Source: Lytechinus pictus (Eukaryota). Taken from it: a stretch of DNA of 64,000 nucleotides. Shown here one piece after another: positions 4,801 through 31,800 of this stretch. Position 1 is the stretch's first letter; every line of letters starts with the position of its first letter. The stretch is from assembly GCF_037042905.1 (NCBI RefSeq), contig NC_087260.1:15686001-15750000 (forward strand). Direction: 5' to 3'. The notes below the pieces were generated by a model. It saw nothing but the letters and a program-made list of their open reading frames with translations. It ran no database searches and was not told where the DNA came from. The translations under genes and the position numbers were made by a program.

Positions 4801-7800
4801 ACATAAATGGGTACTGGCAGGAAGTAATCCCTTAAAAAGCTGTGGGCACCAGAATCGTTAGACTAGACTAGTCGGGGTAATATAGGACCCTCTGGAGCAC
4901 CTAACAAGGTGGATAAGTACAAATACACTACATTAAAATTTAAATGTTGCATCATTATATATCATTATTATTATTACTATTATCATTATTTTATCATTAT
5001 CATCATTATTATTATTATTATTTATCATCATTATCCACAGATTGGTGAGAGGGGTATCAACCTGAGCGGGGGCCAGAAGCAGAGGATCAGTCTGGCCAGA
5101 GTGCTCTATTCCAACCGAGACATCTACTTGCTGGATGATCCCTTGAGTGCCGTAGATGCCCACGTCGGACAGCATATATTCACACACTGCATCAAGGACG
5201 CCATGAAAGGAAAGACAACGCTCTTCGTCACGCATCAGTTACAGGTGAGATCATTGATTTTTTATTGATTGAATCTATGAAATACATGGACACTGTACAG
5301 TTGTTTGCAATATTTGAATAGTAAGTACTATAATATCTTGGAAAGAGTATGAAATAGTATACAATTAATGCACGTAAGCGCGTACATGCAAGGCCAAATA
5401 ATGAATGATGTGCGAGAAGAGCTAGTGGATATACCGCACCGAGGTCTGCAGGACCGAGTGCGGTATATCCATCTTGCGAGTCGAGCACAGAGTTCATTAT
5501 TTAGGTCCTCTATGCAAAAGAACGCGTGCATTGTTTGTTTAAAACAACTCCCCCATGCTACTGAGTTACCCCAAATGCTGTATATTCTAGATCTAGAATT
5601 TAGTGCAGACCTCGCACTATCCTGCACTCTGACGTCAGAGTGCAGGATAGTGCATTCGGTATGACGTCAGAGTGCAGGATAGTACATTTGGTATGACGTC
5701 AGAGTGTAGGATAGTGCATTTTGGATGCCATAGCGCAATTCGCTGAATATCATGTGATCTGATTTGGACTAATCAGATTACAGAACATTCTTGGGTGTTG
5801 TATAATATGAACTATCATCATCATCAACTTCCTCATATCTTATCAATTGATTAAGGCCTCATCAAAACGGCTGACGAACGATACCTAATGGTTAAAGAAA
5901 CAGGAGCGTACATTTCTTTGACTTCCCTTCGTTGATTTATACATTAATTGTGATAGCATGTTATAAAATTTGGGCATATTCTAATTAAATCCTTGTTCAT
6001 CAAATGTGTGAAGAAAATTGTGATTGAGCTACATGTATGGTATAAACAGTGTCTACAGATACATGGAGCAGTAAAATTTGAGTTCCTGCAAGAAGTTTTT
6101 GGCACATTTTTTTTCATTTGTAAATACAAACGCTAGGATGCTATTTGAAATCATTTCTACATGTACATCATTATCACACACAAAAAAATTAATGATATCA
6201 ATAATAACAATGACAAGAAAATATTTCTTTGGTATGGTACAAATTTCTACAAAAGCTTTCATTCATTTTTAAAAAACATACATATCAAATCATTACCTGA
6301 AGATAATTATTCCATTGCACTGAAACTACTGTATAATTAAGTCCAAAGTCGTGAATATCGACACAAATTCGAGTCAACTTTGCATTTAAGTAAAACCTAC
6401 AGAACTAACAAAATACATATGTATATGAAATATAAATGGTCTTTATCATTTGTTTTACTTGAAATACGTTTCGAGTTAAATGCAATAATTATATACTTTC
6501 TGGATATAGTGTTACACTGTAAGCATACATATTCTGAGTTGAAATTACAGAGTCAAGCCAAATGCTAAGTCCTTATTCAAATTTGCATTTTAAATAAGGA
6601 TAAATCCAGATCCTTCAGGGGTTTTTTTCTGGACAGTAACTGAAGCTTAAAGAATATTAACAGTAATTTATTAAATTTAGACTCAAAATATCTTGGTTCG
6701 ATACACATGTAAAATCACATGTCCAAGGTCATTTGGGATTCCCTTGATAATTTACATAGAATATCAAGGCAATTCTGACTAGAGAACCATTAGAGTCACC
6801 ATATACAGGGCTAGACATTAGCAGTGGCCCGAGGCAACCAAAAATGAGAGTTGGGCCACCAAAGTGCTCATGAATTGTAATGTTTTGTATTATTTTAGGG
6901 CCACCAAGGAAAAAAAATTAGTGTGGAGCCTTGCCATATACACACACAACAAACAAAAATTTATTGTACGGCTAATTTTTATGATTGATTTGAATTATTT
7001 AAAGAATAAATCATACATCAAATATGCAATCAATAACTGATTTTTTTTATCACAGGGTATAGATGTTTGATTTGATAGCAATTTCAGTACGGTACTGAAA
7101 GTATTGCAGATATTTGTGTTGGAATAAATTTAAGAATTCAAGCAACAGCTTTATTGACCACTATAAAAGCATGAACTCCGAGTATTATTACTAAAGTATC
7201 CTTTTTGAACAACACAATACACATAAAACCCATGCAGCTGCAATTTATCCGTCATTAACAAACCATCTATACTTGAATATAAAAAAATGATAAACAAAAC
7301 TGGGATTTACTTTGCAACTCCAGCAATTCATCTGATTCGGATTTTGAAAAAGTCGATGTATTTATAGCCATCGCGTTCAAAAAGCAATCCTAGATACTCG
7401 TGATCAATTTGAGCCAGACTGGAATACTCACTTGGTCCCTCGTAGAGCTGTACCGCACCGGGCCACGTCTGGCCGGAATCGAAACTCCACTGCAAGGTCA
7501 TGTTAACGCGCGAATCCGCGTTGTAGGGATGCGACAGGAAGAGCGTGCCATTCAGTAGGGCAAGTGACCCAAAGACGGATGGATCGACCAACGATTCCTG
7601 TATTATGAGGTTCGGGATAGGAAAAGAGTAGCCACCGTCGTAACTAATCGATTGCATTCGGCAATGGCAGTGGAACTTGTTCTCGTTGCGAATACTTACA
7701 AAGATGGTTCCATTTGTGAGTTCAATAACCTGGAAGATAAAGGAAAAAAATTCTTCAAACTTTGAACTTTTATCACAGACTATGGGAGAGGGTTACCCTC

Positions 7801-28800: not shown

Positions 28801-31800
28801 GTGTTTTACTCTTCTTGCTCTTAATTATAAGTCTGTGTTGTTTCAGAAAATGTAATATAATGATAAATATTTAAAAGTGTTTTTTTCATACATATACTGA
28901 TCTTGAAACATAAACCTACCCAGGACCCATAACAGTCATATAAAATATAATCCTGAAAAAAAAATGGTGACATGTCTTGCATATCATCATGAAGATCATT
29001 GATGTGTTTGTTATAGCAATCATTGAATGATGAAATGAAGAACATTAAAGACAAAACACGAGTAAACAAAACATACAATACAAGAATGATTCCGGAAACT
29101 TAATAATTAGCAAAATAAATATAGCAAAAATAATACATAAAAGAAACAAAAACATTATACCATCACTAGTAAGGCAGAACAAGCTAGTGAGCCCTTGACC
29201 ACATGACACAAGTCTTCCTTTGTTGGGTTCATACTTCTTTTGGATCCCATATCCGGGTCCAGGATTGTATTGGATTCCTTTCAATGAAGCATCCTTATCC
29301 CCAAGATACTCCGGTTTAGACCAAGAATATCCCCAGTCTAAACTGGTCACCATGTAAAGTCCTTTAGGTTTTTCCCCGGTCCCGTTCATACACGAAGGGG
29401 TAGAATGAATGCAGAAGGTGTGAATTAGAATCAACTTATTGGTCTCGTGTTCGATGGTTATTGTTCCAAGATTAGTTCCATCCGGGACCGTGTGGTAGTC
29501 GTCGAGTATGAACGCGGTCGGGCCCCAGTTGTCCCCGCCGTCGGTCGAGCGACGCATTGCGATAAACTTCGCCCCAGCATCGCCTCCACTGTACTTGCGT
29601 GCTTCGCTGAAAGCCAGCAGGTCTCCTGTCGGGACTTGAATGAGAAGAGGGATCCGAAACTCGGCCACCTCACCTGGTTCGTCCCTTTCCCATAATATTT
29701 TTTCTTCGATGACTTTGGGACTGAGCGAAGAAACTGACAATATGTAACACAACATCAGAATAACCGGCGAATTGTAGAAAAGTGCTGCCATATCTGCACA
29801 CCAGTGTTCGTCTGCTTCTCTGTGATGGTATACCCTCTGGTGTCACGCGCGTAAAACATTCCCCATAGACTTGTGTGTTAAAATGGCACTTTTGAAAAAT
29901 TCATAAAAAATAAATGTGAAATTAGAGGGTGGAATGTTTACTATCAATGGATAGGATATATATCTGACATTCCAAATCTGACCAGGAAAGGGTACCGTAG
30001 CCAGCTCATTTTAAAAATAAATCGCCATTTATGAAGATAACTATGAATCGATCGAATTCATCAACTGAAACAGTAAAATAGCCCTAATTATTCCGCCAGT
30101 CAAAAAATAGTTCCAAATCACTTATTTATCTTCCCAATTTGGGCGAAGTAAGTTCAGTAGTTACCATTTCTAGAATCAGTGTTAGATTTTGAATCACATT
30201 CATACATTTTTGTCAATCAGCAATATCAAATTGACAAAAATTCGAATGGGTTGGGTCGAACGAATATCTTTAGCCCTCCTGATGTAATTAGGCTCGTGGA
30301 ACCTATATTATGTGACTTATGTATTTTATTTTTTTGAATAGCTACTTTTCTATTCTTTTATATCTGTACACTCACACTAGCACAAAGAAATGCATTGAAA
30401 ATGCCTATTTTCTATGCAATGACCCATTTTAATGTGTTACCCATACATGTTATTTTCACTATATATATATGGATGTATACAAATCCTACCTGCATATAGC
30501 CCAACAGTGAATGCAATGACAATATAGGTCCCTATCCATTGTAATATTAAAGTGTATGTAAATTCTGTGTAGATATGAGGATACCAGAACTGTCCCAAAC
30601 ATAATTACCAAATATACATGAGATTGGATGAGGAAACAATAAAAGAATGAGATACTACTTTAGTATATTTGCATTTGACCTATTCAAAATCTTCCTAGGG
30701 CTGTTGCCTCTCAGATGTAAGAAGGAAGAGATACATAGAGAGAGAGAGAGAGAGAGAGAGAGAGAGAGAAAGAAAAATAATTTTATAGATGGCATGGCTT
30801 AATAAAGAGGGGGGGGGGGCTATACTAAGATTGCAGCACACAGCCACCCCCCCCCCCTCCCTCCTTAGTTGAGCACTATTAGATACCTTACCTTACTCTG
30901 TGCCCCTTTCTAAATACCTTCTTGAAGGCACCACTCTAGTTCTCTTTAGTAAAGTTCTCAAAGTTCTATCTCCTCTCTACCTACCCCCTTCCTAAGAACA
31001 ATTTTAACATGAGGAATTTCTAAAGGTCTTTCTAATGCTAAGTAGGTGATGTACACTAACACAAAACAATGATAAATCAGAACATAAAGAGGCCTTGACT
31101 CTATACATTGACCAATATACATACATTCCTAGGCTACACAGACCTACTAACTTTACCTGATGTAGCCCTGCTAGCCATTAAATCCATTTTTTTTTTGCAC
31201 CACTTGATGACTAAACATATTGATATCAGTGAGAAATTGTTTGCTACTGAAGAGTTTGGCCAAGTATTCCATCCACTACTAGGGATTTCCCATATTACTT
31301 ACAGGTGTCACGCGCGTAAAACATTCCCCATAGACTTGTGTGTTAAAATGGCACTTTTGAAAAATTCATAAAAAATAAATGTGAAATTAGAGGGTGGAAT
31401 GTTTACTATCAATGGATAGGATATATATCTGACATTCCAAATCTGACCAGGAAAGGGTACCGTAGCCAGCTCATTTTAAAAATAAATCGCCATTTATGAA
31501 GATAACTATGAATCGATCGAATTCATCAACTGAAACAGTAAAATAGCCCTAATTATTCCGCCAGTCAAAAAATAGTTCCAAATCACTTATTTATCTTCCC
31601 AATTTGGGCGAAGTAAGTTCAGTAGTTACCATTTCTAGAATCAGTGTTAGATTTTGAATCACATTCATACATTTTTGTCAATCAGCAATATCAAATTGAC
31701 AAAAATTCGAATGGGTTGGGTCGAACGAATATCTTTAGCCCTCCTGATGTAATTAGGCTCGTGGAACCCTCTGTGCATGTGATCTGCATGCAGTATATGG

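Follow-up and report, generated by a model that had tools for sequence, protein, structure and literature searches.

A window of 64,000 nucleotides from the sea urchin Lytechinus pictus (GCF_037042905.1, contig NC_087260.1, positions 15,686,001 to 15,750,000) holds three intact tandem sialidase genes related to NEU1, here called copies A, B and C, which share the complete catalytic core and differ at positions that correspond to published substrate contacts. Each copy has been kept for more than 200 million years with its own conserved pocket changes. A first-pass annotation of the window had proposed a toolkit of sialidases specialised for different substrates; the age and constraint of the copies, the transcription of copy A and the fixed changes at contact sites agree with that proposal, whereas the trio proved not to be the full NEU1 set of the urchin. 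Substrate specialisation is plausible from the residues involved. We see an even chance that the three genes encode active retaining exo-sialidases of the secretory pathway which would differ in the substituents they tolerate, copy A at C4 of the sialic acid, copy C at C7-C9 and at the N-acyl group, with copy B being ancestral-like.

A six-frame reading of window positions 7300-29850 gave three sets of sialidase-like open reading frames (ORFs), all on the minus strand and in tandem in the order C-B-A. Each gene has three coding exons with open frames, and every intron is GT..AG (Table 1). As the first-pass annotation had stated, intron positions are the same in all copies: intron 1 lies in phase 1 inside SD/D, and intron 2 in phase 0 directly after PGExQ. 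It was equally right that the copies are strongly diverged, with pairwise protein identities of 43% for A-B, 45% for A-C and 58% for B-C. The models of A, B and C match the L. pictus RefSeq proteins named sialidase-1-like (P0057, P0001 and P0055, respectively) at 100% of residues, and score 79.7, 71.9 and 83.6 bits against Pfam BNR_2 (PF13088; cut-off 31.4). All three are intact GH33 genes. By sequence, the closest solved structure is murine NEU1 (8du5, E 2.8e-78). AlphaFold2 predicts both A and C to be folded (predicted local distance difference test scores of 92.4 and 90.2), and Foldseek searches with these two models returned 8du5_A as the top match, with a template modelling (TM) score of 0.85-0.89, followed by bacterial sialidases; both models show the six-bladed beta-propeller.

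The residue numbers of the human NEU1 sequence that we used agree with all those quoted in the structure paper of Gorelik et al (2023). On this numbering, R78, R97, D103, E264, R280, R341, Y370 and E394 are kept in A, B and C, and the Arg triad, the O4 Arg R97, D103, E264, Y370 and E394 are also present in all 36 aligned relatives. The catalytic core that the first-pass annotation had read in the three copies, namely the triad, the Asp acid/base, the Tyr/Glu pair and the terminal Glu, is complete in each of them. In mouse NEU1 the catalytic residues are Arg72, Arg274, Arg335, Tyr364, Glu258 and Asp97 (PMC10198634); we follow the numbering of that paper, human positions being mouse plus six.

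The differences between the copies are found around this core. In mouse NEU1, the glycerol group is contacted by His214, which is the His of CGH, and by Asp257, which is the Asp of PDE; activity drops markedly when one or the other is mutated. The cavity for the N5-acetyl group is lined by the NLG of DGLNLG, with Asn132, the backbone of Leu133 and Gly134 (PMC10198634). For NEU2, modelling-level support places Glu39 and Asp46 in interaction with the C4 guanidino group of zanamivir (PMC5669518), by the C4 substituent, the first-pass annotation having put the equivalent of Glu39 by the O4 of sialic acid; a J Med Chem review makes no mention of this role of Glu39. Aligned with these proteins, and in mouse numbering, Asp257 is Gly in A, B and C. 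Copy C further carries Gln for His214 (CGQ), Thr for Leu just before Asn132 (DGTNLG) and a Cys-Cys loop shortened to 8 residues. Copy A has Ala-Pro for Glu-Ala ahead of the O4 Arg (SAPRK), which replaces Glu89 (human E95), together with Thr in YRIP (YRTP), Glu before the nucleophile Tyr (EYSS) and Ser for Gly two residues past the acid/base Asp (human G105). The motifs of A and C are present as they had been quoted in the first-pass annotation. The acid/base loop of all three copies has the NEU1 length and keeps the Ala of G-A-K-F. Copy B retains the His, Glu and Leu states at the contact columns and alters no column that is conserved elsewhere. Its long Cys-Cys loop, which had also been put forward, does have 15 residues, against 11 in canonical NEU1, but this reflects a 3-residue insertion seen in two Lytechinus species only, the other B orthologs having 12; we dropped the loop as a conserved specialisation.

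These changes are stable within orthogroups. The A-specific states are fixed in 5/5 A orthologs and the C-specific ones in 4/4 C orthologs, and when we scanned for columns that are altered across a whole orthogroup but conserved to 90% or more among all remaining sequences, A had seven, C three and B none. In a fish-heavy sample of 120 other NEU1-family sequences, E95 and H220 are each invariant (120/120), and position 263 is Asp in 117 and Asn in 3. The pattern of changes at conserved columns in A and C is far beyond chance. As placed by alignment, the substitutions sit on or beside published contact residues and not away from the active site. Reading them as contact changes requires the 2023 NEU1 structure as a reference.

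Searching the L. pictus genome itself, we found a fourth NEU1-like gene on a different chromosome (G000:C15:6190347-6197058, minus strand; loci L008-L012). Its coding exons, of which there are at least five, have vertebrate-like junctions, with per-exon identities of 53-77% to NEU1 of vertebrates and hemichordates. The gene keeps PDECQ, CGH with an 11-residue loop, DGLNLG and CEARK, so that both members of the His/Asp glycerol pair are present; its C-terminal tail ends in ITGDL, with the Tyr absent. The first exon of this gene, encoding the signal peptide, was not located in the own-genome search. The trees unite this gene with NEU1 from sea cucumber, hemichordates and vertebrates; A-C belong to another, well-supported clade of echinoderm type, whose further members are crinoid, starfish, brittle-star and holothurian sequences (99/98 and 100/99). 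A-C are not NEU1 orthologs, and the canonical ortholog is the fourth gene.

The echinoderm-type clade is marked by a 3-residue NPxL insertion, a shortened C-terminal region and, in 24 of 25 sequences, loss of the Asp of PDE (to Gly, Thr or Ser). The SD/D intron occurs in crinoid and starfish genes of this clade and is absent from the canonical gene. Passages of Giacopuzzi et al (2012; PMC3431349) give six exons as the rule for NEU1 genes; A-C have three coding exons, and only the post-PGExQ intron is common to both structures. The three proteins end right behind the last strand (...KIRIR, ...IQLNL and ...IQLNP) and have no YxxΦ-like tail. The first-pass annotation had correctly noted PGE and the missing YGTL tail in all three copies, but these are traits of the whole clade and not contrasts between copies. 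Its suggestion of possibly secreted enzymes found no support, and a reading of the missing tail as a sign of secretion was dropped, as canonical urchin NEU1 is also without the Tyr and the C-terminal aromatic signal is, in the passages of PMC3431349, confined to chordates. Among the echinoderm-type sequences seen, PDE occurs only in P0042, an A-type protein of Diadema antillarum, which has DGLSLG as well and a Cys-Cys loop of 8 residues. In the tree it stands apart from the A protein of D. setosum, and it may therefore be an additional paralog or reflect an erroneous model.

The C-B-A array, in the same order and orientation and with three exons per gene, is also present in L. variegatus (L016) and Diadema setosum (L017), with an ortholog for each of the L. 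pictus copies. The A orthogroup, the C orthogroup and the B+C group are each supported at 100/100, and B+C is a solid echinoid duplication. Only Lytechinus-Lytechinus and Lytechinus-strongylocentrotid pairs were usable for the ratio of nonsynonymous to synonymous substitution rates (dN/dS, Nei-Gojobori). With L. variegatus and a strongylocentrotid as the comparison, it was 0.08-0.10 in A, 0.14-0.15 in B and 0.10-0.13 in C. All three copies are under purifying selection; the first-pass annotation had named a ratio near 1 as a sign against specialisation, and the range per orthogroup was 0.08-0.15. In S. purpuratus, the B-type proteins P0060 and P0061 are 97.9% identical and the C-type proteins P0068 and P0069 97.4%, each pair lying on one chromosome; these are very recent duplicates or retained haplotypes.

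Our first tree had placed the split of A from B and C within echinoids, a history that we abandoned when inclusion of crinoid, ophiuroid and holothurian paralogs turned the backbone of the tree into a polytomy. In the crinoid Anneissia japonica, locus L019 (1-18588) carries at least four echinoderm-type genes within 23 kb, in mixed orientation and with the same two introns. One of them, Aj3 (L019 16130-18588, minus strand), whose model was built by hand on account of a GC donor (its second intron is GC-AG), has the signature of copy A, as do Anneissia P0087 and brittle-star P0089. All three proteins have Thr in YRIP and Ser for G105, and at E95 they carry Gly or Ala. They group in a clade of their own (100/99); a tree that unites this clade with urchin A was not the best one and was not rejected (approximately unbiased test, p = 0.40). 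The A type may be older than the echinoderm classes, or it may be convergent, and under either history this combination of residues looks functional.

Expression was followed in L. pictus for copy A, which was the copy covered by the read analysis. Two assembled RNA sets give a copy A contig with 0 mismatches and the joins 7729/9510, 9604/10185 and 10912/12283, and two stranded raw RNA-seq runs contain 6-11 reads per coding junction of copy A, all in one orientation. Because spliced RNA matches its model in L. pictus, copy A is not silent, silence of copy A or C being an outcome that the first-pass annotation had listed among those speaking against its proposal. Allelic differences in the coding sequence (CDS) of copy A are synonymous in 24/25 listed cases. 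For the strongylocentrotid orthologs, spliced full-length Logan RNA contigs of A, B and C type were found (SRR31798691 and SRR31798692), with 96-97% identity to S. purpuratus proteins; a search of Logan protein entries returned none for the exact L. pictus A, B and C proteins. Separately, intron 2 of copy A contains repeats (window 7985-8378 and 9167-9363) where RNA coverage is very high on either strand and loose ends are numerous; the consensus of one loose end resembles a tRNA-derived sequence (…GGGATTCGAACCC…). These repeats are probably short interspersed nuclear element (SINE)-like elements expressed from many loci, outside the sialidase transcript.

If the three copies work as NEU1 does, their three Arg would hold the sialate carboxylate, the Tyr, activated by the Glu, would attack C2, and the Asp on its mobile loop would serve as acid/base. 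By alignment, their differences lie in that part of the pocket which recognises the variable groups of the sugar. With Gly at Asp257, A, B and C are all without the NEU1 Asp that hydrogen-bonds the C7-C9 glycerol chain. Copy C in addition has Gln instead of the glycerol-contact His on a shorter carrier loop, and Thr beside the N-acyl pocket. In copy A, the Glu beside the O4-binding Arg is gone, with the acid/base loop and YRIP altered as well, and copy B would represent the ancestral state at the positions changed in A and in C. To us the likeliest interpretation is a division of labour by substrate, in which the copies would tolerate different C4, C5 or C7-C9 modifications or linkages of echinoderm sialic acids. 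Three features suggest that the proteins enter the secretory pathway, namely a hydrophobic N-terminus, 4-5 sequons and disulfide positions that match all three of NEU1.

Several points weigh against this proposal. The contact roles are carried over by alignment from mouse NEU1 and human NEU2; synonymous divergence is saturated between the paralogs and against Diadema (pS about 0.8); copy C, being without both the His and the Asp, could by analogy be a weak or inactive enzyme; and partitioned expression alone could explain why the copies were retained. In its full form, the last point holds that all three copies share one specificity and were kept through a split by tissue, stage or compartment, for instance between gut lysosomes, coelomocytes and gametes, with pocket changes that are near-neutral or compensatory. 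Tandem duplicates do commonly subfunctionalise by regulation, the catalytic core is the same in A, B and C, copy B alters no conserved column, and the NEU1 pocket is already wide and tolerant (PMC10198634). However, E95 and H220, invariant in the 120 NEU1 sequences, were replaced and then frozen in each orthogroup since before the split from Diadema, which is unlikely if the changes were neutral, and crinoid and ophiuroid paralogs show the A signature as well. We consider a split by expression alone a possible explanation, although a somewhat unlikely one.

A narrower form of the specialisation that we favour would assign defined targets to the copies, as members of a sialidase family proper to echinoderms in which the pockets for the side groups were remodelled. 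The Glu-less A type, found in urchins, crinoids and brittle stars, would be an ancient enzyme for sialic acids that are modified on the C4 side or unusual in other ways. The C type, specific to urchins and without either glycerol-chain contact, would be an enzyme for residues modified or linked at C8/C9, among them 8-O-sulfated caps and the alpha2,9/alpha2,8 polysialic acid that sperm flagellasialin and egg jelly contain. Although we hold this to be unlikely in so specific a form, these would, if it is true, be the first animal sialidases specific for such modifications.

Another possibility is that hydrolysis has been crippled in one of the copies, C being the likeliest and A a further candidate, and that this protein instead binds sialic acid, or regulates or partners the copies that are active. 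Copy C is without the His and the Asp, mutation of which markedly cut human NEU1 activity (PMC10198634), and copy A is without an otherwise invariant Glu and has an altered acid/base loop. Against this, all catalytic residues and the O4 Arg are strict in every A and C ortholog at a dN/dS of ~0.1, a combination to be expected only under continued selection for catalysis, and the entire echinoderm-type clade, the conservative copy B included, is without the Asp. Loss of catalysis in one copy appears improbable to us. Finally, an annotation or assembly artefact or a young pseudogene is hardly credible in view of the open frames, canonical splice sites and RefSeq-identical models, the recurrence of these features in orthologs from four further genomes or transcriptomes, and the mismatch-free RNA contig of copy A.

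Among known systems, the closest is mammalian NEU1 (8DU5; Gorelik et al, 2023; PMC10198634), to which A-C are 37-40% identical and whose catalytic residues they share, together with the three disulfide positions, the acid/base loop length, an N-terminal signal-like segment and the intron after P-D/G-E-x-Q. They differ from it by the Gly at Asp257, the NPxL insertion and the shorter C-terminal region without a YGTL-type tail, by the loop and His214 changes of C and the Glu89 change of A, and by having 3 coding exons instead of 6, the SD/D intron being clade-specific. Human NEU2 in complex with 2-deoxy-2,3-didehydro-N-acetylneuraminic acid (DANA) or zanamivir (1VCU and 2F0Z), our reference for Glu39, has the same fold (TM about 0.73) and catalytic machinery; unlike A-C, to which it is about 22% identical, it has a glycerol pocket of Tyr179, Tyr181 and Glu111 and no signal peptide. 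The NEU3 arrays of teleosts, amphibians and reptiles, described in passages of PMC3431349, likewise result from local sialidase duplication, in another subfamily. The array of Anneissia japonica is also made of tandem echinoderm-type genes and has its own lineage history.

The same passages of PMC3431349 report four NEU1 copies in Strongylocentrotus purpuratus and Paracentrotus lividus and place one NEU1 duplication in the echinoderm ancestor. These published copies are almost certainly the same four loci as those described here; the S. purpuratus RefSeq proteins fall into clusters of at least 90% identity with our transcripts of A, B and C type. Gene annotation and copy number were known already. 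Within the passages, no C-B-A array, 3-exon structure, split between canonical and echinoderm-type genes or replacement at contact sites is described. New here are the paralog-specific conserved changes at defined contacts, the canonical/echinoderm-type split and the A signature across echinoderm classes.

Urchin sialic acids rank among the most unusual known. They include glycolyl-linked polymers of N-glycolylneuraminic acid (Neu5Gc) and, on sperm, 8-O-sulfated alpha2,9 polysialic acid, and they act in fertilisation and sperm motility. To our knowledge, no enzymes that remove these modified sialic acids are known. As to the unusual echinoderm sialic acids invoked by the first-pass annotation, PMC9630641 describes Neu5Gc-rich, 8-O-sulfated, alpha2,9- and alpha2,8-linked polysialic acids in sea urchins. 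The only systematic differences between A, B and C sit where the variable groups of the sugar are read, and canonical NEU1 provides an internal control in the same genome. Turnover of modified echinoderm sialic acids would in this way be reduced to four clonable proteins in a genetic model species, and enzymes with such specificities would serve as glyco-analytical tools. If the enzymes prove equivalent, the case is one of ordinary old tandem duplication.

Table 1. Sialidase genes and exons in the 64,000-nucleotide window (positions are those of the window; UTR, untranslated region).
Feature	Position	Strand	Description
Copy A	CDS exons 10824-10185, 9604-9510, 7729-7328	minus	378 aa
A non-coding 5' exon	12283..12413	-	Spliced to 10912, as joined in raw reads and in Logan RNA contigs X1 and X3
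A first coding exon	10185..10912	-	CDS 10185-10824 and 5' UTR to 10912; signal-like N-terminus
A first exon motifs	YRTP 10675-10686; SAPRK 10621-10635; SDKSAKF 10591-10611	-	SDKSAKF is the acid/base loop; also DGLNLG and CGH
A middle coding exon	9510..9604	-	DHGKTW...PGETQ; PGETQ 9510-9524, Gly in place of the glycerol-contact Asp
A last coding exon	7328..7729	-	VIELTNGT to stop; SIRN 7682-7696 (second triad Arg), SRVN 7502-7513 (third triad Arg); 3' UTR continues below 7000
A last exon, catalytic sites	SEYSS 7418-7432; FERD 7370-7381	-	Nucleophile Tyr in SEYSS; terminal Glu in FERD
Copy B	CDS exons 20606-19943, 19494-19400, 17519-17109	minus	389 aa
B first coding exon	19943..20606	-	YRIP, SEARK, DGLNLG, CGH; 15-residue Cys-Cys loop 19956-20006
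B middle coding exon	19400..19494	-	DGGVIW...PGEVQ
B last coding exon	17109..17519	-	IVELKNGT to stop; NVRN, SRIN, SGYSC, YEKD
Copy C	CDS exons 29791-29161, 28342-28245, 27357-26953	minus	377 aa
C first coding exon	29161..29791	-	FRIP, SEARK; DGTNLG 29465-29482; CGQ and 8-residue Cys-Cys loop 29174-29203
C middle coding exon	28245..28342	-	DLGLTW...PGEVQ
C last coding exon	26953..27357	-	VVELKNGT to stop; NARN, SRIN, SGYSC, YEKN

Between B and C, an ORF of 131 aa (21098-21493, plus strand) has no Pfam match. The strand opposite to the sialidases carries exons of an ABC transporter of the ABCC type (3115-3498, 4909-5268 and 35193-35669, all plus); the exon at 4909-5268, with LSGGQ and Walker B, matches Pfam ABC_tran (2.1e-8). 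The sialidase trio is nested in an ABCC intron of ~30 kb that divides the first nucleotide-binding domain, and in the L. variegatus annotation an ABC gene of 1470 aa spans the same sialidase cluster. Another gene nested in this intron is represented by the ORF at 32767-33156 (plus strand; Pfam Tmemb_185A, 1.8e-12), and a Tmemb_185A gene is annotated beside the cluster in L. variegatus too (L016 591-980).

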